DNA of 60,594 bases, counting the filler, from Sluysia triapertura (taxonomy: Eukaryota), in NCBI GenBank assembly GCA_046118255.1. It is 4 parts of 4 records of this genome, joined end to end, with 100 filler letters (N's around TTAATTAATTAA, not from the genome) between each part and the next. Parts side by side here need not be neighbours in the genome. Positions count along the whole stretch, not along the records: positions 48,005 to 60,594 come from JBJNIA010096552.1; 3 more parts are not named here. The stretch is one strand, 5' to 3'. Of this stretch, positions 48,005-60,594 are shown in pieces (the stretch's first letter is position 1; every line of letters begins with the position of its first letter). The notes beneath the pieces are model-generated. The model was given only the letters and a program-made list of their open reading frames with translations. It did not search any database and had not been told where the DNA came from. The position numbers were made by a program, and so were the translations under genes.

Positions 48005-48237
48005 CCTTAAGCGCTTTTGAGTACTTTCGCGGTAGATATGAGCGCAATATAAATTAATATATTATTATTATTATTATCTAAAAATAATTAAATATATGTT
48101 TTAATAAAATAATTTGTATCTAAAAATAACCTATACTAAGAATAATATAATTAAGAATATCTTAATATCATTAATTATTTATAAGATTAAAAAAATGTTA
48201 TAAATTGTTAAAAAATTTATAAATTATAAAAAATTAC

Positions 48238-48396
48238 TGGATACAGGGTTAAAGTGACATAGAATAATGATAGTAATTGACTAAAATAAAACAATATTGT
48301 TAGACGGGGCTGTTAGCTCAGTGGGTAGAGCATCAAAATATGCATCGAGAGGATCCGGGTTCGATTCCAGGTCAGTCCATTTTATGAATTCTAACA
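48238..48396 (+). repeat. tRNA-Ala-derived repeat copy 3 (core ~48307-48379)
   Basis: Same TGTTAGAC..TCTAACA core and upstream GATACAG..TAAAGTGACA. Confidence 0.75.
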
Positions 48397-49985
48397 GGTG
48401 CATGATACCGAACTATAAAACCGATTTTACTTAGAATTCTAAGTACAATTTTATTAGTAAACAAAGTTATAGGAAAATCACACAAAATTCATCACACTTC
48501 ATCACGTAAAAACATTTCACATGCACACAGATTATTATTAGTAAACAAATTACTAAACTCATTCGGAAAACAAACATAATCATTGCACATAATTATCATG
48601 AACTACCGCTATTATTATTACAATTCAAATCGTATTAAAAATATATATATAATAATTATTGTCATTATTGTTATATAATATGATTATCAAATAATAACTT
48701 TTATAATAAATTTCATAACTTTTGTAATAAATATCATCATTATCCTAAATTATATAATAATTACGTTGTTGATATTGTTATTATTCCTTTATCCTTATTA
48801 TCAACCTTTTTTTATTTTTTTGTTTTCCCAGTTTATGTATATATTTATTTGTGTTTAGTATCTGTTATAAAATTTGATCTCTTAACAACTCCAAGATTTC
48901 AGTCGAACTGTCTCATATAATATTATCCTCCTCAGTGTCAACTGAAAGAGTCTTCCTTTAATTGTAGAGTTGTCCGTACGAAATCAGAATGACCGAACTT
49001 AAAAATCCACGGTATTCGAAGTAGTTATCCAAATGATTTACTCAACACTTCTAATAATTCAATAATTTGTTCGAAATCTCCGCCACCTCAATTAAAGAAT
49101 CGCTCATCTGGTTTATTTAATGCTAGATCCTTGGTAATGATGAGTGTTACTAATTCATATAGTTCTAACTTAACTTAATACTAATATATCCAATCTGGCA
49201 TATTCAAAAGAATCGTCGAAATCATTAAAATAAGCACGAATGCCATTTTTATATAGTTCATTAATATTATTAATTATGTCTATAGTACGAATTATAGTAC
49301 ACAGACGTATTATTTTAAAAAGTTAGTTGAAATCGAATTCGATATGTTTACAATCTAACCTCTTTATCTGCATATATTGTGGAACAATCTCTGAATTATT
49401 TAGGAATTTAAATGCATCCTTTACCTAAAACCGTATTATCTATCCTAACTCATAAACAAAACCTTATTTGAATTGAATGCGCAAAAATGATTATTTATCT
49501 TTTTATTATTCAAAATTCTTGGAATTAAAAAGAGTTTTTATTTGCAAACTTTGAGTTATATTTAAAATTACCTTTGGTTTATTTAATAGACTTTTCATAA
49601 AATATTGCTACTTTTCTCACCATCTTTAATTTATCTTTATAATCAGCAAAATGTCATCATTTAAATCTATAATAATTAAATCATTAATAATTGTTTTTCG
49701 TCAAAAAGAATCTTTTTGTGTTTAATAAGATCAAAAACAAATTTAATTATTAAAACAATTTTTATTTATAGTTTTAACATCACCTTTTTATTTTATAATG
49801 ATTAAATCTATATAAATTCGGTTTGTTTTCATTCACACTTAACATTAAATTTACCATTTTCCGTTTTAACAATCAACTTAACTAAATGTATATTTTAAAT
49901 TAAAACGTAAATTAAAAAGTAATAGTAAAAAGATTAAAAAATCAATATTATAAATGTAGATATGGTAAAAACTTAGACAACCAAA

Positions 49986-50290
49986 ATGCTAAGTAATTTA
50001 ATGTCAATATCGTTATTATTTACTGCTCTATTTATACCATATAATATGTCTGTCGAATGCTTCACATGTAAAAATTACAATGGAACACCTATACCGGATA
50101 ATTTCATTACCGTCTCTAATCGTGACAGCTGTTGGAAGTGTTTCATTGAATTTCACATTGACAGGATTTATTCTGATATAAAGTGTTGTCACATTCTATA
50201 TAGTCCGATGTCCACAAAATATAGAAAATGTTAGACTTGTATGAAGATATGTTTTAACTGGAGGTTATATTACTAATTGTGTATATACTG
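49986..50290 (+). CDS. Possible small secreted Cys-rich protein (Ly6/three-finger-like start); gene or pseudogene
   Basis: Hydrophobic N-terminus followed by VECFTC..SCWKC; donor GTGAGT at ~50290; frame beyond ~50200 unclear. Confidence 0.3.
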
Positions 50291-52395
50291 TGAGTATATT
50301 TATATTATTCTTTGTTCTATTTTATAGTTTCCTAATAAAAAAGTTTTATCTCGTTGGGTTTAATGTATTATTCTTTAAGCCTAGTTTGTTAGTTTATAAA
50401 TTTAATAGCTTTTAACATTGTTAAAATTAAATGTTAAGTGTTGCTTTTTTGTCAAAAGATTTATGTTTAAATTTAGAAATATAAAATTAAATATTAAAGA
50501 ATATAATTTAATAACTTTTTTAAAGTTTATGCGCCCCACAAAAGTTAACAAATAAATTTTTATACTTGGAATCCGTCACTACAAGTAATCGTATTAAGCT
50601 GAAAAATTTTCACATGCATAGGTTAAAAGTTGCATTTCTTTAGCAATTAAAAATGCAAAATTTCTTAATATTTTTTGAACTTAATATTTTTTGAACAATC
50701 AACAGAGCCTTATTTAATTATTTTTACGCTAGGATAATACTAGCGATAAAATCATGAGTAAATTTTTATTTTTAAAAAATTAAGGAAAATACCTTAATTT
50801 TATAATTAATCCCTAAATTATTTATAATTACGTACAAATAAAAAGGATATTCTAAAACGTAATAATAACCCATCCTTAGTAGAGTCTGATTACAGAAGAT
50901 AAGTGACATAGTGAGAAAAAAATCCTAGAGTATATAGGAATATAAAAAGTCTTCCAAAACAAATCTACTGTTTAGAATTGACAATCGCATTTACAGAAAA
51001 TAGGATTTTTTATTGGAATTTTGTGGATTAGACTCCTTCTCTTACAAGATTCAATTTAAAACAAAACCTTTAGGAGCGTCTTCCATTAGAATACAAACTA
51101 TTGACTATAAGCGAACTCTAATAAACACTTTTAGTACTGAATTATTTTAAATTATATAAAATTGGTAGTTCTTAAACAAAAATGTGATCATAGTGGATCA
51201 CGTTTGTCACTGCATTTTTCTTTCTAAATAATCACTGTAAAGTAATATATTAAAAATTGAAATATTCTGATATAAATAAAACTTAACATTAAATTAATTT
51301 GATTATCTTGAATGAGAAAGTTATAGACGCATTAAATTCAAAAGAAGTTACAATGAGTTTTCCATTTTTATTTCATGAAAATATTTTCAAAATTAATGAG
51401 TACTTTATCGAGCGAAATCCAAGCCGTTTCAGAATGATTCGGAACATTTTAAAGTATAAAAGGTTTTATTATGAAACAGAATATCTACTTTTGTTGATGA
51501 ACAAAAATATTATAAAGAGCATATAATTGCGGTTAAAATCTTATTTTGATTACTCAGCTTTGAATTTAAAAGTTTAAAAGGTTAATTTAAATTGCTTAGA
51601 CGCAACATATTAAAACCTACAATTTATCAAAATAAAAAGTTTTCATGAAAATAAGCATAAAAACGGTATTCATACTTTTTAAAAAGTTGTCATTTAAAAA
51701 GAGTTGAACATGAATTAATGTTCGAATGGTTAAACCTGATTAACAATAAATTTTAAAGTTATTTTACGGGCATAATTAGAAATACTAGATCAAAATACTT
51801 GTTAACAATGTCATTAATAAAAATAAATGTTTAAAATTTATTATTTTAACACATTATAAGCAAGTGATTTTCAAAAATATCATGAATGGCGAAAATTCAT
51901 GATTTTGAGAAAAATCGTTGATATCATTTAAATTCATGTATAACAAAAATATCTAGATATTTAAATAAAGCTTAAATCATATGAACTAAAATCTATGCAT
52001 GTATCCAAATGCATTTTATCATTACTCGCTTTTAAACAATGAGATATTAAAATCTTTTTTTGCTATGGGGATGATAATAGAAAATGCAATTATTTCAAAT
52101 ATCAATATGAAACTAAAAGTATTCATTAATTTTGAATATTATAAACACTTTAAAATTTATAAAAAACTGATTTATTTTATAAAATTTGAACTATATTAGT
52201 TCATAGGTTAAATTAAATTAAATTAATATGTTATATTAAAAATAATAATTACAATGAAAAAATGTTAATATTCATTAATAAATATAAAGGTCATTTTTGC
52301 AAAGTGAAATAATTTAAAATTTTTGCGTTAGTCAAGTGGATTTTAATGTTTGCTACTACTTAATTACAGGAAGCAGTTAATGTGTTAAATATTTC

Positions 52396-52397
<2 letters not shown>

Positions 52398-52437
<40 letters not shown>
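52398..52437. repeat. (AT)n microsatellite just upstream of the nuclease gene
   Basis: Direct observation. Confidence 0.95.
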
Positions 52438-52440
<3 letters not shown>

Positions 52441-52476
52441 GGATTTTAATCTAATTTTAACAGTAAAACTGCAATA

Positions 52477-55144
52477 ATGCTTTTAATTTCAATATTTCTT
52501 TATATATGTTTCAGTATTTTTTTCAGTAACACTCAAGGTATATTTTAATTTTTAATAAAATAAAATATTCAGATTGTAGAGGATCCAAAAAATATGAATT
52601 GTGTTATTATGCTAATGTAGAACGGATTATTAATCCAAATGAAATAGTAATTAAATTGTTGAAATCGAACAAAATGTTGACTATTAGTTTAATTGACGTA
52701 TATATTCCAATAAACAACAATACCCAACGTTCGTTTTCACAATATATTGAAAGCTTATTAAGTGGTAAAAGTCAAAAGATAAAAATTAAAACTACGGAAG
52801 AATATATGAAACAACCAGTTGTGCCAGTAATATTATATATAGCTCGACGGAATATTAATAAGTTTATTATTTTTATAAAAAATTAATTTATGATGAGACT
52901 TTTATTAAAAGGTTATTCTTTCCCAAACGATGCCATTCCAATCACTTTAAAACGCGTTATTGATGGTGATACTTTAAGTGTTTTATCTAAGTTTGGAAAT
53001 TACGAATTACGTATTCGAATGGTATACATAGATGCCCCAGAAACAAAGCAGGAATTCGGTTCTGAATCTACAAATCATTTGAAGAAACTACTAACTAACA
53101 CAGGTGGTGAATTAGTATTAGTTAAGCAACAAAAACCTGATAGATACGGTAGAACACTGGGAGTAATTAAGATAGGAAATATTGATATAAATAAGTTAGA
53201 ATTGATTTTTTTATTTATTCTAACTATTTTTATTTATTATTTATCCTAAAATAAATAATATTAACAAATTTTGTAAAACTAATATATTTAGAAAACATAA
53301 TTTATATTAATTATTTTATATTTACCAAGGACATTATTGTTGTTTTGATCAACATGAAGTAAAAAATTTATGAAAATTTTAGGAATGAATGGAAGTTAGC
53401 AAATTAGTTGAACAAATAAATCAGATTTTGAAACTGATTCAGACCATCATACTTTTAAAAAAATAAAATTTTATTTTTTTTAATAATAATAAAATTTATT
53501 GTAACATAATTTTGCCATCAAACTAATATTCAATAAGCAGGGTTTGGTCAGATAACGTAAGATCACGTTTTTGAAAGAGTATAAAAATGTTCCATAAATA
53601 TTTAATTTTCAGGCTTATTTTAGATTCTGATTACAAAAAAATATCCGCATTCATACATTTTTTCATTGATACATTGATCGAAATTTTGGTGAGATGTTAT
53701 TTTTATTTAATAAAACAATTTTGAAAATCATCGATAATCATTGTTTACTAGCAATGTATATCAACCCATTTAGTTGTTTAACAAAGTCTGGTGAAACAGC
53801 GATAATTTGATATATTTTATCACATATAGTTGAAAAATTTTCGTTTTAATTATTATTTGCTTAAAACAAAATACGAGTAATTAAACGACAATGTAAATCT
53901 GTCATATAATAATTATATGGTTAACATTTTTAGTAGGTGTTATCTGTTTAGTCAAACAGGATAAAAATGAAACTGATGATACACATGATAAACAAAACGT
54001 GATATATAAATAAGTTGATGTTTAATTTACATTTCGATATTTTGTTTAATTTTGTTATATAATTTGTAGATGTACAAATTCTAAAAAATGCTGTACATGA
54101 AATACTTAAATGTATTCGTTTAATTTCAACATTTACTTAATTGAATAATAAGTGTTAATATTAATATTATTATTCAAATTAATTTTTTGAAAAATTATCA
54201 AAATAAATCCAATCCAAAAACAAAATTATACATTTTATTGAAACTGAACTACAAATATCGTTTCTGAAAAACTTTTAGGAGTCCTTTGAGTTATTTAAAC
54301 TGAATTGATAATGTCTTGTACAGATCATCAAATTTTATGGAAATTGGAAGCTTACCAAATCTTTGTAAATTGTCTTTTTTCGTATAATGCACTTTATAGA
54401 TGTTACTTCTCCATTTATGTGCATAGTTTCTACCACGCTGTGATGAGAAAGAACAACCTTATTAAAAGCATTCAAATTCAATCCAGAAAAACCTTATACT
54501 CAAAAACATATATTCTACGGAAAACAAGAAAACTTCATCTACAAAAAGTGTTTTCAAAATGACAGTTAACTTTTAAAAGCATAGCGGCCTTTTTTTAATT
54601 TTTGAAAAAATAGAAATCGGACACTTATTTCTGGACGGAAGGAGTAATATATTACATTATTAACACATACAAATATCATACGTACAACAGAAATGTCATC
54701 GAAAATTTTCTTTTAATGAATTAATTTTTTTAAAACAATCTTGTTTAATTACGAATTTATCTTCATTTGATAGTATATCAGAGGACAGAATATAAGCATT
54801 CTCCATCCATCAATGCAAGAATTTCAATTTCAACTTTCAACAAGTTCTTGTCCATTTTTTCTTTAAGTTTTGTAACAATGTTTGTCTTTAAGATATAAAG
54901 AAAGCATTTGGAAACTTAATTTTTGTTATAATAGAAGTATTTAAACTTTAAAATTTTGTATATAATTCATTATAGACAAATGGTAGTGGACGGTTATGCT
55001 TGGTGTTATTTAAGAACCAGGTGTCCTTTAGATTATCAACAAGCAATGAAAAATGCAGAAGAAACTAAAAAAGGATTATTTGTTTCTAATATAGCACAAC
55101 CACCATGGGAATGGAGAAAAGAAAATAACAAACGTCACATTTAA
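52477..55144 (+). CDS. Putatively secreted staphylococcal nuclease (thermonuclease)-family protein, two SNase domains, 271 aa; exons 52477-52537, 52573-52861, 52898-53194, 54976-55144
   Basis: GT-AG introns of 35, 36 and 1781 nt with matching phases give an 816-nt CDS; signal-like MLLISIFLYICFSIFFSNTQ; domain 2 has RVIDGDT, RIRMVYIDAPE, DRYGR, GYAW, KKGLF, PPWEWRK. Confidence 0.88.
54620..54646 (+). mobile_element. Stowaway/mariner-type terminal inverted repeat inside the nuclease intron
   Basis: Reverse complement TA-CTCCTTCCGTCCAGAAATAAGTGTC resembles the CTCCCTCCGT..ATAAGTGTC TIR; partner end not found. Confidence 0.55.
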
Positions 55145-57218
55145 TTTAAACATTAATTTTATTAACTGCGATTCTAGTTACGCTTCTGGTTTTGGTGTTT
55201 ATGATTTTATATCTGATTTTATAATTCCAAGTTGTTAATGAATAACATTATGGCTTACCTGTTTTTCATCTTCGTTTATATTGTTTTGTAAATATTTAAA
55301 TAGCATCGTAAAGAAATTTAATGTTTTTGGAGGATAATATTGAAGGGCAATAATTTTTATATGATATCCTTCTTCATAACGTCTAACGAATTCTCAATAT
55401 TAAATCATCTCGGTTGGAATGTTGGACCAAAAGCCATTCAGGAATGTTTTCACGAATTGTTGCTTTTTAGGATTGATATTTTCAAACATTCGTGTTCGTT
55501 GATATCTAATACATGCTTTTGTTGTCTTGTAAAATGTACTGGATTAGTTCTCATTGGATGGTCTTTTTGTCTAGTCTTTCTTTGTGTTCTTATCTTGCTT
55601 CATACACCCAATCAAACACCTTTTACATCTTGAGTAACTTAACACGCTTAAATCTTCCTCAAGAGAAAAAAAGAGGACAAACTGGGTAAATTTTTAATAA
55701 TTAACTTTATGCGAAAGAAAAGTTTTGATGATGAACTAATTTTAAACAATTTTTAAATAATTTATCCAGTGGAAATTTTAATGAAACTTCAGCTGCAATA
55801 ATAAGTAATTATTTTTGTTTTGTCCAATTTCCAATCTCCTAAATTATTGTCAAACTGCTATATAAGCAGTTATATTTTGTAGAAAAATTAGGAACAGAAA
55901 CGACAAAATTGAAAAATAAAAGACAGAAAGTCAAAAAGAAGAAAATACTTCGAAATCTTATTAAGCTTGAGAGACGCTACCTCAATCCATTTGTTGAAAA
56001 CAGCTGATTTAATTACGCAATAAGTGAATTTATAAAGGTTAGTGACGGGCGTTTCTTTTTTATACAGGCATCAACATTTATTAATATTAAATTGTGTCAT
56101 CTATGGTAGCAACTTTTAGAATTTTATAGTTAGAGGTTTCTAACTTTAAGTTTGTATAAAAACAGTTATTGATTGTATCATTTAAAAATTATATTGAAGA
56201 CATTATTACTAAAGAATAATTTATATATTATAACAAGAAACTTCACTTCCAATAAGAAAGTTGCCTCAACACATTTGCGGTAAACATTGTGATTGAGGAT
56301 TGATCTTTAGAAATTGACAGCTTTATAAGCAATGGGACTATTATTGTGATTAGTGAGTTAAGTTTTTATTATTTTATTGTCAAATACGGGCGTCAACATT
56401 TGTGTAGCCCCTGGAGAGTGACTTTTAATTTTGAATTTATATCATTTTTAAAGAATACTTAAAATATATCGAGATTACATGTTACAACCCATTAGAACCC
56501 TTTAAAATCTTAAATAATACAAAAAATAGAGTTACTTTTCGAGAATATTAAATAATGTTTTCTATAATAGAAATCGAAAATTCTAGAATTTTTGAGAAAT
56601 TCCATTTATTCTGATTTATTATGACTGATATATTAACTAGTTGCAGTTGAATCACAATCATTATTAATCAACTCAATTTTTAGAGTTCACAATTTATTAG
56701 TCGAGATTTTCGATAATTTAATATAATGATCGAGAAGGTTATAATTATTTATTATTTTGGAAAAAGACGTTTGTAAATTGGTAGGTTTCATTTTTATTAA
56801 GATGATTCGTAACAGCAAAATCATTTTAAACAATTTTTTAATCCATATATAATAAGGGACAAAATTATTTGTTAAGGTATTCATTTATGAAGAAATTAAA
56901 GACCCAAAAAGGCTTTAATTTCAAAATATGAATTATTATTTTATAATTTTTATTCCTAATATTTCTTGTATATCATATCTTACATTTGTATAATAAAAAT
57001 TCATTACAATTGTGTTTTTGATTAATTTTATGGCTTATAGACTAGTGTTAAGGTACAATAGGAATTTCAACATTAAAAAGATATTTTAATCAATTTTATA
57101 TATAATTGATTATAATAAAACCCCTTGTACTTATTAGGTACTGATAGAGTAAGCGTCACTTTAAAATTTCCCATTTTATTGCTACAGAAATGCCCACTTT
57201 AAATTGTAAGTTGTTTAC

Positions 57219-58240
57219 TGTAACCGAACTCTCAAATTATTTTACCGTAAGAGTAATAATAAGAAAAATTATATATATTGAAATTGAAATAAAACGAGAA
57301 CTAAGGTCAAGTAATAATAATAACAACAACAATAATAATAATAATAATGGGTATTGTCAGAAAATAAAGGGATTAGTATTTTATAAATGTTTTTAAAAAA
57401 TTCATAAGTATAATTAATTTAATTAGAATTGTTTGAAAGTCGTTTTAACTTTCTTTATGATGTTTGAATACACAATCATGAAATGTATTAATTTGATTCT
57501 TAGGTTGTCATCACAATTCTCTAAAATCATATAAAATGCTTTAAAATTATTTATGAATCTTTAAAATCACTTTAAGAATAATTATTTTCGAAAAGATAAA
57601 TAAAATTTCTAATAAACAAAAATCATTTCTAAAAATAGAATATAAGCTTCTAGAATGTTATAGGACATTCCATCAATTCTCATTGGCTGATGATTAGTAT
57701 ATAAACTAGCATCAGTTTAATGAGAATCGTCATTTTGAAAATATTAATCAGCCATTTTAGATTTTTAGTTCAATTGGATTTTCAAGGATTTTAGAGATCA
57801 TTTCGAAGAAAATTTTCATCAACAAATTCCATGTTCTTTCATGTAAAGTTAAGCTAATTTTGTTTAAGAAAATTAATATCTTAAAATACAAGTAAATTTG
57901 ATTTTTAAAAGAAAAAGTTAAGTTTCCCCTATATATTGAGGGTTAAAATACTAAATTATTAATAAAGAGTTAAAGACTAAAACAGTTTTAACTACAATAT
58001 TTACAAACAATTTTATCCTTTCTTTCATTCTTATTTTAAAATTCCACAATTTTTGTAAACCATTGAATTTATGAATAATAAAGTTTTGGATTAGTGGTTT
58101 TATTTCATTGTTAATTAAGATAAGTATTGTTTATAAAAATTATTGTGTAAAAAGACAGGTATTTAATAAGCATCAAATTGATTAGCAGCTTTGAAGTTTT
58201 ACAATTAAGACTAAAGTATTTATTAACTTATCAAGTTACA
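57219..58240 (+). repeat. Solo-LTR-like element ~1 kb (TGTAAC...GTTACA) with internal CCAAT/TATA
   Basis: Terminal 6-bp IR; start TGTAACCG(G/A)AC also at 32069, 58248 and (TGTAACAGGAC) 5102 minus; internal homology to 31515-31580; no TSD. Confidence 0.5.
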
Positions 58241-58510
58241 AGAATGCTGTAACCGAACCCTGTTAAAAAATATTTTTCCGTACGTTATGTGTCAAAAAAA
58301 CCACAGTATTATGTACACAAAGACTGTGTGAAACACGTCAATGTATATAATGTAAAATCACCTGTTCTAATTAATTTTCTTTATTATAAAGTTAAATTTA
58401 TATATTTTAATGAACGTATAATAAAAGTATATATATCAAATTAATGTTCATTAAGAGATCATTCTAAAAATGATGTACCGTTAACGTGTTGCGCATTGTA
58501 TCAAAAGTTG

Positions 58511-59554
58511 TTATTGAAAATAAGTTTTATATTTGATTAGATTTATATTCAATTTAAGTTTTGGGAATCGATTGTTTATATTGTTGTCTACGCTGCTATG
58601 ATTATCGTGTGTCATGACATATTTCAAGTATTTGAATTGATGGAGACGTTTGTATAATTTTTGTTCTTTGTCGAACTCTAAGATGTTTTTATTGTCGAGA
58701 TTAGGTCTGTATGAATCTCGGAGCGCTATAGTTATTTTACAGTATATGGTTAATTCGTGATGACAAAATGATTCATCAAAAAGATCAGCTAAAATTACAT
58801 TAATACTTAAAATCGAGCCGTTATAAAACTGTTTATCATAGACGGCTATCAGAAACGTGCTAACATTTAAAATTCCCTTACAAAAAATTTCTTGATCGGA
58901 TACATTTATCGTGGCATTGTCTTTATTGAAAATTATATCATTAAAATTAAGACGTGGTTTAAGAACATATATTATATTTACATAAAATTTGAAAAGATTA
59001 TATATCTTCCTGGGGCTCAGCCTCGTTCGTACCTTCTTCTTCATTGATCCATAAGCAGTTCTGTAATTAGAATGATAATATATAAGAAAGTCAATATATG
59101 TATACATACAGTTATGATAAAATTTTTTACCTTTAAACAATGGCTGTTCTTCGGATGTATTGTGCCATGCTAATTCGTTCGGTATTAACTCGAGGTAACC
59201 GTCAGGTTCATTGGAGTGGCAAAATGTTACTTGGTAACCTCTGGCATAGTATTTACAATTAGAGGCGTCACATAGATAATTGTTTAAGGAACATGTACAG
59301 TGGGAATCTATGGACGTTAAACCTTGTCGTTTCTCGCATCTTGGTGTACTTCCTTTAACTGAAATTTCTGCAACATCTAAAAATGTAATTTTGACAACTC
59401 CTGCTTTATTCCACTTTAGTGCATCATCAATCTTGGCAGTAATTAAATCTAAAACTTCAACAGAACGTGTATCATGTCTAAGAACATCCATCGTGTAGAT
59501 TATCATTTGACTTTTAACAAAATGGTTGTCGTGTTTATTTTTGAGAATGTTCAA
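58511..59554 (-). CDS. Intact intronless 347-codon ORF of unknown function
   Basis: Longest ORF in the window despite AT-rich background; Cys/His cluster HCTCSLNNYLCDASNC; first ATG at codon 17. Confidence 0.6.
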   Translation of the reverse strand: MNILKNKHDNHFVKSQMIIYTMDVLRHDTRSVEVLDLITAKIDDALKWNKAGVVKITFLDVAEISVKGSTPRCEKRQGLTSIDSHCTCSLNNYLCDASNCKYYARGYQVTFCHSNEPDGYLELIPNELAWHNTSEEQPLFKGKKFYHNCMYTYIDFLIYYHSNYRTAYGSMKKKVRTRLSPRKIYNLFKFYVNIIYVLKPRLNFNDIIFNKDNATINVSDQEIFCKGILNVSTFLIAVYDKQFYNGSILSINVILADLFDESFCHHELTIYCKITIALRDSYRPNLDNKNILEFDKEQKLYKRLHQFKYLKYVMTHDNHSSVDNNINNRFPKLKLNINLIKYKTYFQ

Positions 59555-60297
59555 ATATTTAGAATCAGTAATTATGAAATTACTTTCCTTTTAACCACAA
59601 TGGCTGCCGTGATTATTTTAAAATGTCTGGTTTTTTATTAATCTTTCAGCCGTTAATGTATTTTACTGTATTTTCACTTGGCTCAATTGGTAATTATGTC
59701 TGGTAAGTATTAATTTTTTGTAAGCACTTTTAATCGATGGCTAATGATAATTTTCTGACATTTTATTGGGCAGAACCAGTAATAACCAATCCGGCTTGTT
59801 TTTTTGATTTATTTTTTAACTAATGGTTGCCAATAATATTTTTGCTGCTTTAATTTTAGTCTGAATTCTACTGGCTACCCAATCGACTTGCGTTATTGTC
59901 TTCTTGTGAGTAATTTTTATTTTTGTCTCTCTGTTCTATTCATATTACCAAGTCAACTGACAAAAAAGACAGATGACGATGATGATGACTGTTATTGTGC
60001 GCTCTGATGCAATAGCTGGTTTGATTGGATGTACAAATCAGTGGATTGTTTATTGTGTACTGTGTACTTTGTGTGCACAGTAATTTAATTTTTGTAAGAT
60101 TCAATTATTACGTAAGAATGTGAATTGATGTTGAGAGATTCTTACGTAATAATTGTAACTGTGAAAATAACGAAATGACGTACTAATGTGATAACAAGTA
60201 ATAGTAATAATGATTAATAATACTGATAAATAATAATAATAAATGATAATAAAATAATAATAATTAAAATTAGAGTGTATAATAATAATATTAATGA

Positions 60298-60298
<1 letters not shown>

Positions 60299-60339
<41 letters not shown>
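60299..60339. repeat. (AAT)n microsatellite
   Basis: Direct observation. Confidence 0.95.
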
Positions 60340-60340
<1 letters not shown>

Positions 60341-60594
60341 TGTAGTAATAATATGGAACTTATAAAATGATAATAATAATAGTAAATGAAAATAAAATGA
60401 AATGCATAAATCTTGGAGTCTTGATTATAACACAATCTTTCTGTCTTTAAATCCTTTCTTCTGACATATTTAGTACTATAAGATGGAGATAGAAATGAAA
60501 GTGATAAGAGGGATGAGAATGTAGAGTAAGTTAAATGTTTAGCTTGGTTTATGAAAGTTTGTTGAAAGGTTTAAGTTTTTGAAACGCCTGTTAA

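Follow-up and report, generated by a model that had tools for sequence, protein, structure and literature searches.

A predicted four-exon eukaryotic gene joining a candidate signal peptide, a degenerate SNase-like half-domain and a complete bacterial-type thermonuclease domain

The closest described relatives of the gene reported here are the thermonucleases of bacteria and plasmids, among them S. aureus Nuc and NucI, IncP-type plasmid nucleases and the YncB-type enzymes. These share with our gene their fold, the residues D21, R35, D40, E43, Y85 and R87, and a C-terminal G-x-A-W-x-Y ... G-L-W/F ... P-W-x-W-R signature; they also carry an N-terminal export signal, as we predict here, and are 40-54% identical over exon 3. 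Unlike them, our gene has three spliceosomal-type introns, lies in eukaryotic DNA, carries an extra and apparently dead half-domain upstream, and has alanine in place of T41. The standard animal SNase-domain protein, Tudor-SN (SND1), is likewise built of repeated SNase-like OB-fold domains, some degenerate and one truncated, and it is among the weak structural matches of our exon-2 model. Tudor-SN is, however, a cytosolic protein of ~900 aa with four or five SN domains and a Tudor domain, whereas the product predicted here has 271 aa and a hydrophobic leader; a Pfam search finds no Tudor match in any exon, and domain 2 keeps the full bacterial-type active site. Fungal Lcl3 and plant CAN1/CAN2 are small proteins too; each has a single active SNase domain and is targeted to a membrane through its N-terminus, by a transmembrane anchor in Lcl3 and by lipid anchors in the CAN proteins. 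Going by their descriptions and not their sequences, these single-domain enzymes are set apart from our gene by its additional half-domain. We found no description of this tandem-SNase gene family in the literature.

The gene lies in a window of 60,594 nt, filler included, from Sluysia triapertura (Eukaryota; GenBank assembly GCA_046118255.1), and all positions given here count along that window. Our preferred reading, which we consider reasonably probable, is that an AT-rich eukaryote here carries a working gene of four exons, encoding a leader, a dead half-domain and a complete SNase domain, and that this gene belongs to an old eukaryotic family. Because the 98-aa exon 3, scored alone, falls far below the NCBIfam equivalog cut-offs for NucI and EcnA (NF047694 and NF047969; 46.1 bits against 250 and 30.8 against 180), we do not regard the gene as an orthologue of any named bacterial enzyme.

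Judged from its sequence, the four-exon eukaryotic gene at this locus is genuine and intact (Table 1). Its exons sum to 816 nt, or 271 aa plus a stop, its three introns are all of the GT..AG type, and the codons split at the three junctions read D, K and K. GC content is 26-33% in the exons, 9-11% in introns 1 and 2, and 23% in intron 3. In DNA of 24.7% GC, where the expected fraction of stop codons is 0.09, the chance that a random stretch stays open for 96 or 119 codons is 1e-4 or 1e-5. The presence of three such introns, the host-like GC content and a eukaryotic neighbour gene indicate integration in host DNA, not contamination. Within intron 3 we also see a high-copy repeat at ~54185-54655, where depth rises to 5278 against ~20 elsewhere.

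Table 1. Predicted features of the gene and its surroundings, in window coordinates
Feature	Position	Strand	Description
TTTTAACAG	52455..52463	+	acceptor-like site 13 nt 5' of the ATG, seen in the sequence itself; may mark an intron in the 5' UTR or an acceptor for trans-splicing
Exon 1	52477..52537	+	61 nt; MLLISIFLYICFSIFFSNTQ plus first base of split Asp codon; hydrophobic leader
Intron 1	52538..52572	+	35 nt, GT..AG, 8.6% GC; placed, like exon 1, by sequence logic alone
Exon 2	52573..52861	+	289 nt; predicted degenerate SNase-like N-terminal half; ends ...RRNIN-K at a phase-2 intron
Intron 2	52862..52897	+	36 nt, GT..AG, in frame; holds in-frame TAA at 52884-86
Exon 3	52898..53194	+	297 nt; N-terminal two thirds of the predicted active SNase domain
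IDGDT	52959-52973	+	checked by translation
Ca ligand D (D21)	52968-70	+	exon 3
RMVYIDAPE	53016-53042	+	checked by translation
R (R35)	53016-18	+	exon 3
Ca ligand D (D40)	53031-33	+	exon 3
General base E (E43)	53040-42	+	exon 3
DRYGR (D83, Y85, R87)	53139-53153	+	checked by translation
Intron 3	53195..54975	+	1781 nt, GT..AG, phase 2, at the conserved ...DIN-K position
Exon 4	54976..55144	+	169 nt; C-terminal SNase part; TAA stop at 55142-44
CX5C pair, GYAWCY...C	55004-06 and 55022-24	+	exon 4, which also holds a KKGLF motif
PWEWRK	55103-55120	+	exon 4, checked by translation

The catalytic part of the protein is encoded by the last two exons. Exon 3 alone matches the Pfam SNase family PF00565 with 39.1 bits (E 1.1e-9, curated cut-off 21) and aligns with residues 11-87 of the S. 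aureus nuclease structures in the PDB (E 1e-8), keeping D21, R35, D40, E43, D83, Y85 and R87 in S. aureus numbering; its catalytic residues form invariant columns in alignment A3. T41 of the S. aureus enzyme is replaced by alanine, at a position where the calcium ligand is the backbone carbonyl. Exon 4 aligns by BLASTP with residues 115-163 of a bacterial thermonuclease (P0066; E 2e-9), directly after the exon-3 match, and the two exons, scored separately, cover the SNase domain including its C-terminal helical part. We read exons 3 and 4 as one complete PF00565 domain predicted to hold every catalytic residue. A first-pass annotation of this DNA had proposed a complete spliced CDS with a hydrophobic leader and all SNase catalytic residues in its second domain. 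The structural alignment and the invariant columns bear out the last of these points, and we recover the CDS as four exons with the frame kept and canonical GT..AG sites throughout, the hydrophobic leader being present in exon 1.

Exon 2 is of a different character, with NPNE where DGDT is expected and with neither the R35 residue nor the DAPE motif. On its own it has no Pfam match, and pairwise BLAST finds no match between it and either exon 3 or the first domain of a related gene from soil (L082, described below). A local alignment with that domain scores 48 (z 3.9), a value reached by 8 of 2000 shuffles, and the two are collinear along the whole length of exon 2. When exon 2 and the L082 domain are together compared with a profile of the N-terminal SNase part, hhalign returns a collinear match with a probability of 94% (E 1.4e-7), a signal to which the L082 domain contributes part. 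An AF2 model of exon 2 has the order strand-strand-strand-helix-strand-strand at low confidence (pLDDT 59), and Foldseek places it among weak, generic OB-fold matches that include SNase (E ~0.02-0.06); we take this model as suggestive, not decisive, support for an SNase-like fold. Taken at the level of sequence, exon 2 appears to be a catalytically dead, truncated N-terminal half of an SNase-like OB fold.

The junction of exons 2 and 3 is the only one with outside support, which comes from a DNA-like public run (X1) and not as an RNA junction. Two contigs of this run join 52861 directly to 52898 (side 56), skipping exactly 52862-52897. The differences that this variant has in exon 2 are all in-frame, namely a 3-nt deletion and a G>T change at 52821 that replaces Val with Leu. 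Coverage of exon 4 in the same run is thin.

A second member of the family comes from a 1.3-kb forest-soil metagenome contig (L082; JGI 3300031718, Ga0307474_10255762), which carries a eukaryotic tandem-SNase gene. Like our gene, it has an inactive first domain followed by an active second one, and in both domains a phase-2 intron falls after (D/N)IN-K, matching ours in position and phase. Its second domain is 43% identical to exon 3 (E 2e-24), and its last exon, which shares with exon 4 the CX5C pair and the pattern AMKNA..TKKGLF..PW.WR, is 49% identical to it with both cysteines invariant; its own two domains match one another with E 7e-8. The cysteine pair is kept in all three aligned C-terminal exons, that is, exon 4 and both of those in the soil gene. 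The two genes differ in that domain 1 of the soil gene still has its C-terminal exon, absent from ours, and in that the soil gene has introns of 42-102 nt, is itself visibly less AT-rich and ends at TGA; its contig lacks the 5' end of the gene. A ciliate genetic code is ruled out, as our C-terminus ending at TAA is as long as that of the soil gene ending at TGA. Because this second eukaryote shares the introns and the tandem layout, the gene, whatever its origin, would have been present in or have entered a eukaryotic lineage before intron gain, tandem duplication and the split of the two lineages, and the uniqueness that the first-pass annotation had implied falls away, since another eukaryote has both of its SNase domains interrupted at this position and in this phase. 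Searches with an exon-4 profile returned only L082's own contig from a metagenome scan and only its own 58-aa ORF from a word search, and found no match in a viral scan. By these searches the family appears small, sparsely sampled and eukaryotic, with L082 as the only other known member.

Beyond this family, sequence affinity points to bacteria. Among ~15 billion proteins the closest are bacterial or plasmid thermonucleases, only 40-54% identical. A scan of 185,579 bacterial species genomes gives a best identity of 42-43%, and the best plasmid match, at 54%, is to IncP-type plasmid nucleases whose plasmid context we confirmed. In an exhaustive HMMER scan of 1.84e9 cluster representatives no match scores above 71 bits. 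From the top 150 we inspected ~40 in full, and these, P0020 excepted, have a bacterial look; screening the whole 150 by motif and composition singled out P0020 alone, an exon of L082. No fungal or plant SNase sequence was recognised among these 150. A viral donor is ruled out by viral contigs of at most 38% identity, and a recent bacterial donor by the low ceilings of 42-43% among species genomes and 54% among plasmid nucleases. Trees built on 92-94 columns have no supported branches or placement. The best tree found constrains the three eukaryotic rows to a single clade (57 rows; log-likelihood 16 above the free search, p-AU 0.64). Because a 94-column phylogeny offers no supported branches, neither a bacterial donor nor vertical descent is demonstrable from it, and the absence of animal relatives carries little weight because the source genome is itself outside the protein collections, where exact look-ups of two ORFs from the window gave no record. 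The first-pass annotation had described a horizontally acquired, domesticated nuclease of bacterial type. Bacterial-type affinity and integration in the host both hold, the best matches being the thermonucleases just named; a recent or identifiable acquisition is not supported, given a best bacterial identity of 42-54% over ~80 residues and a tree that settles no placement.

The gene's N-terminus and its first domain each admit another interpretation. The leader is a 16-residue hydrophobic run with a Kyte-Doolittle mean of 2.68 over residues 2-16 and no charged residue; it has no basic n-region, and a small-residue -3/-1 site, SNT|QD, follows it. We treat it as a candidate signal peptide, with possible cleavage at SNT|QD, or a signal anchor, and the protein as probably secreted. 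An uncleaved anchor that tethers the nuclease to an organelle, the ER or the plasma membrane, with no release, is an unlikely but serious contender: a hydrophobic run of this kind lacking a basic n-region would suit it, and fungi and plants do have small SNase nucleases that are tethered, yet 16 residues make a short transmembrane segment but a typical signal-peptide core, and the S-N-T|Q site sits directly after the run. The conserved cysteine pair fits an oxidising, extracytosolic place under either interpretation; kept in all three aligned C-terminal exons, it would fit a disulfide in such a setting. One might further suppose that the gene is decaying or mis-modelled, exon 2 being non-coding or a dead remnant, exon 1 spurious, and only a fragment made of exons 3 and 4 SNase-like. 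The lack of Pfam and BLAST matches for exon 2, the loss of the C-terminal exon of domain 1 and the thin X1 coverage of exon 4 lean that way. Against it, none of the four exons is interrupted by a stop in DNA where stops would make up 9% of codons, splice sites are canonical with the frame kept and every catalytic residue intact, the X1 variant changes exon 2 only in-frame, and exon 2 is collinear with the first L082 domain, all of which makes decay or mis-modelling highly improbable.

How the gene reached this genome can be read in several ways. A recent, lineage-specific transfer from a bacterium to an animal parasite, yielding a domesticated secreted effector that, for example, degrades extracellular traps or scavenges nucleotides, would account for the bacterial and plasmid best matches, for the lack of any known eukaryotic SNase protein among the top matches inspected and for the hydrophobic leader. 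Such a transfer is nonetheless improbable: bacterial identity is only 42-54% over ~80 residues with no donor clade, the gene has three introns and a fully host-like composition, and a forest-soil eukaryote shares its introns and tandem layout, so that the gene is older than their divergence. Vertical descent from an ancestral eukaryotic small SNase, of the stock that gave fungal Lcl3 and plant CAN1/CAN2, with loss in most sequenced animals and a bacterial resemblance due only to strong conservation of the fold, agrees with introns that are old and common to two eukaryotes. The N-terminal hydrophobic segment would also resemble the Lcl3 membrane anchor, the tree gives no resolved placement, and the lineage is under-sampled in protein collections. 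We hold vertical descent to be possible and yet doubtful, as the ~40 matches read among the best 150 of 1.84e9 representatives look bacterial except for P0020, and fungal and plant sequences, which should be in that library, were not recognised among the top matches. In our judgement the gene would be an old resident and not a fresh bacterial import, and an ancient transfer from a bacterium to a eukaryote is plausible, since by sequence the family stands closest to thermonucleases of bacteria and plasmids. It is conceivable, if only as a tentative scenario, that an invertebrate anciently acquired a bacterial thermonuclease, which gained an intron and was duplicated in tandem, its first copy then being inactivated and, in this species, cut down to a half-domain pro-region; the product would be an exported, extracellular Ca2+-dependent nuclease used, for example, in feeding on or defence against extracellular DNA in traps or biofilm, and intron 2 would be polymorphic, present or absent, in the population.

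Returning to our preferred reading of an old eukaryotic family, the sequences show the gene structure, the identity of the domain, its intact catalytic residues, the bacterial affinity of the best matches and a eukaryotic sister gene with shared introns, whereas we infer secretion, the disulfide, enzymatic activity, what the protein does for its host, and when and in which direction any transfer took place. The family ancestor would have had two tandem SNase domains with the same phase-2 intron in each, and the C-terminal exon of domain 1 would have been lost in this genome, leaving only the N-terminal beta-barrel half of that domain. Because the intron position is common to both domains and to two species, the relative order of events may be read as intron gain, tandem duplication, speciation and then exon loss. 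In the protein, the leader most likely directs the chain into the secretory pathway, and the enzyme's site of action would be extracellular or a lumenal or oxidising compartment. There D21 and D40 would bind Ca2+, with the backbone carbonyl after the second Asp as third ligand; Glu43 would activate water, and Arg35 and Arg87 would stabilise the pentacoordinate phosphate. As predicted from the SNase family, DNA and RNA would be cleaved to 3'-phosphate products.

The enzyme class itself is already well understood, and the gene is an unusual member of this known family. If the host is an animal, it would be one of few small bacterial-type SNase nucleases in Metazoa, and if the signal peptide is true, the protein would be a candidate extracellular nuclease that could degrade extracellular DNA or traps, aid digestion or salvage nucleotides. 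The order of events proposed above may also be useful as a worked illustration of the steps by which a domain of bacterial type turns into an ordinary gene of a eukaryote.

As for the surroundings, the neighbour gene is eukaryotic, contains an intron and resembles cap methyltransferases; a word search with its 347-aa ORF gave no match, and an Rfam scan returned only a tRNA-like match.

The nuclease encoded at 52477-55144 is a new member, with an odd structure, of the very well known staphylococcal nuclease family (SNase; Pfam PF00565). It lies in a piece (48005-60594, record JBJNIA010096552) with a GC content of 24.7%, and the four-exon model proposed by the first-pass annotation was reproduced exactly in the sequence from 52477. 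The exons total 816 nt, or 271 codons and a stop, and the codons split at the three junctions encode D, K and K. GC content is 21-33% in the exons, 9-11% in the two short introns and 23% in the long one. Stops make up ~9% of random codons at the local composition, which makes open stretches as long as 96 and 119 codons improbable (chance 1e-4 and 1e-5, respectively).

Features of the piece at 48005-60594
Feature	Position	Strand	Details
tRNA-like element	48307-48379	plus	Rfam 37.3 bits (cut-off 29)
Cysteine-rich ORF	49986-50234	plus	82 aa
Microsatellite	52396-52437
Nuclease exon 1	52477-52537
Nuclease intron 1	between exons 1 and 2		35 nt, GT..AG
Nuclease exon 2	52573-52861
Nuclease intron 2	52862-52897		36 nt, GT..AG
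Nuclease exon 3	52898-53194
Nuclease intron 3	between exons 3 and 4		1781 nt, GT..AG
High-copy repeat	54185-54655		inside intron 3
ORF in repeat	54305-54562		85 aa
Nuclease exon 4	54976-55144		TAA at end
Microsatellite	57330-57370
Methyltransferase-like gene	58511-59554	minus	multi-exon; extends upstream to about 60000
Microsatellite	60240-60360

The spliced protein was analysed one exon at a time. Exon 3 matches PF00565 (39.1 bits, E 1.1e-9) and aligns to S. aureus nuclease structures over residues 11-87 (E about 1e-8). In the alignment to S. aureus nuclease, whose numbering we follow, the Ca2+ ligands Asp21 and Asp40 are kept, as are Arg35, the general base Glu43, Asp83, Tyr85 and Arg87; the coordinates of these catalytic residues were confirmed through translation, and they are invariant across an alignment with nine homologues. 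Position 41 is Ala rather than the Thr of S. aureus nuclease, the ligand there being the backbone carbonyl. Exon 4, which alone has no Pfam match and carries PWEWRK near its end, aligns to residues 115-163 of the bacterial thermonuclease P0066 (E 2e-9), immediately downstream of the exon 3 alignment. Together, exons 3 and 4 thus make up a single SNase domain that is complete and collinear and whose active site is intact.

A eukaryotic sister gene emerged when 1.84 billion cluster representatives were scanned exhaustively by HMMER with exon 3, which drew 4014 matches, all at or below 71 bits. A motif and composition screen flagged only one of the best 150 of these, P0020, a 124-aa ORF whose end (...GAVDINK) coincides with that of exon 3 (...GNIDINK); some 40 of these top 150, examined over their full length, are bacterial in appearance, P0020 excepted. 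Tandem-SNase lipoproteins are common among the bacterial matches. The source of P0020 is L082, a eukaryotic contig of 1342 nt from a JGI forest-soil sample (3300031718, Ga0307474_10255762) that encodes two tandem SNase domains, clearly homologous to one another (E 7e-8). Domain 1 is inactive (VLNGTT for IDGDT, HLYGISAPS for R..DAPE), while domain 2 is active (VIDGDT, RMSGIDAPE, DMYGR). Both L082 domains have a phase-2 GT..AG intron after DIN-K, and the position of intron 3 here is also conserved in L082. Identity is 43% between exon 3 and L082 domain 2 (E 2e-24) and 49% between exon 4 and the last L082 exon, and a CX5C cysteine pair is common to all three aligned C-terminal exons (exon 4 here and both of L082). 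The C-terminal exon of L082 domain 1 has a match to the terminal part of the Pfam SNase model (E 1.2e-3). Additional searches aimed at the family recovered L082 alone again.

Exon 2 has no match by BLAST or Pfam. Across its whole length it aligns with L082 domain 1 (local score 48, z 3.9, reached by 8 of 2000 shuffles), and its last residues, RRNIN-K, precede a phase-2 intron, as in every other copy. A profile of these two sequences is collinear with an N-terminal SNase profile (hhalign probability 94%, E 1.4e-7). In the low-confidence AF2 model of exon 2 (pLDDT 59), the elements follow the order seen in the SNase barrel (strand-strand-strand-helix-strand-strand), and the matches of this model are weak OB-fold ones alone, SNase and Tudor-SN among them. 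The catalytic positions are gone, with NPNE for DGDT, Ser for Arg35 and no DAPE; exon 2 is the catalytically dead remnant of a first SNase domain. In contrast to L082, the C-terminal exon of domain 1 is absent here, and the 36-nt intron passes directly to domain 2. The protein thus consists of leader, dead half-domain and active SNase domain. For the leader, exon 1 encodes MLLISIFLYICFSIFFSNTQ, a 16-residue hydrophobic run free of charge (Kyte-Doolittle mean 2.68), after which comes a polar stretch whose -3 and -1 positions hold small residues (SNT|QD). These features fit a candidate signal peptide, and the run could alternatively serve as an uncleaved anchor.

The sole public sequencing run containing the locus is X1, whose kind is not on record, and no RNA run contains it. 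Depth in X1 is about 17-23 and similar over exons, introns and flanks, and X1 therefore behaves as DNA. Some X1 contigs contain intron 2 while two others skip exactly 52862-52897 (GT..AG, side 56). As X1 behaves as DNA, we rejected the latter as evidence of splicing. One intron-2-less contig further differs by an in-frame loss of 3 nt at 52810 and by G>T at 52821 (Val to Leu), and X1 has G for A at 52781 (Ile to Met). Forms with and without intron 2 overlap the same flanking contigs, and the intron-less form may be a second allele, in which case the presence of the intron is polymorphic, or else a paralogue of very recent origin. Through this variant, the predicted frame over the exon 2/3 junction is shown to occur in nature; outside read support is confined to this junction, with none for introns 1 and 3.

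The nuclease gene is old in eukaryotes. Intron gain came first, followed in turn by tandem duplication, divergence of the two species and loss here of the domain 1 C-terminal exon. In a 57-row set, the best tree found keeps the three eukaryotic rows together (p-AU 0.64), consistent with, but not proof of, a single origin and duplication within the eukaryotic lineage. The gene belongs to a small eukaryotic clade whose affinities are bacterial. Its earlier description as bacterial-type was fair, the closest sequences being bacterial. The best matches in a scan of bacterial and archaeal genomes (one per species, 185,579 species) have 42-43% identity, 155-aa nucleases of IncP-like conjugative plasmids reach 54% across about 80 residues, and viral contigs reach at most 38%. 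Among single-domain proteins the most similar is P0001 (54% over exon 3), which lies at 10001-10468 of L081, an IncP-like conjugative plasmid contig, beside KorA/KorB/ParA partition and TrbC/VirB3/VirB4 transfer genes.

The first-pass annotation had also proposed horizontal acquisition, to be checked by BLASTP and phylogeny; its observation was confirmed and its interpretation supported in part. The best matches are bacterial; trees from 92-94 alignable columns gave no placement with support. On weak evidence, we lean modestly towards ancient transfer from bacteria because the L082 protein is the only recognised eukaryotic one among the best library matches, in collections that lack this genome's own proteins. 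Alternatively, the gene may descend vertically from the Lcl3/CAN stock of old eukaryotic SNases (small nucleases of fungi and plants); the comparison covered library matches. To see the protein as a parasite effector, or as an enzyme that degrades traps, is speculative. The finding would be of greater interest were the host an animal and the protein secreted.

The repeat inside intron 3 has a contig depth of up to about 5278, against about 20 in its flanks, and many rearranged joints in X1. This repeat probably represents a transposable element or a SINE-like family, and its ORF has no Pfam match. A (TA)n microsatellite precedes the nuclease ATG by about 40 nt, and in spurious ORFs long (AAT/ATT)n microsatellites translate to poly-Asn, poly-Leu or poly-Ile. 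The first long ORF of the minus-strand gene matches the mRNA cap guanine-N7 methyltransferase domain (PF03291, E 1.3e-7) and has a degenerate SAM-binding glycine motif (VLDLITAKIDD). After ...PLFKG comes an intron of about 70 nt, and no relatives of the ORF turned up in a word search covering 5.8e9 proteins. The tRNA-like element, not called by ARAGORN and with an unpaired anticodon arm, is a tRNA pseudogene or tRNA-derived repeat. The 82-aa ORF, whose sole Pfam match is weak (RNHCP, E 0.035), has a hydrophobic N-terminus and a cysteine-rich sequence (CFTC...CWKC...CC), and could encode a small secreted protein.
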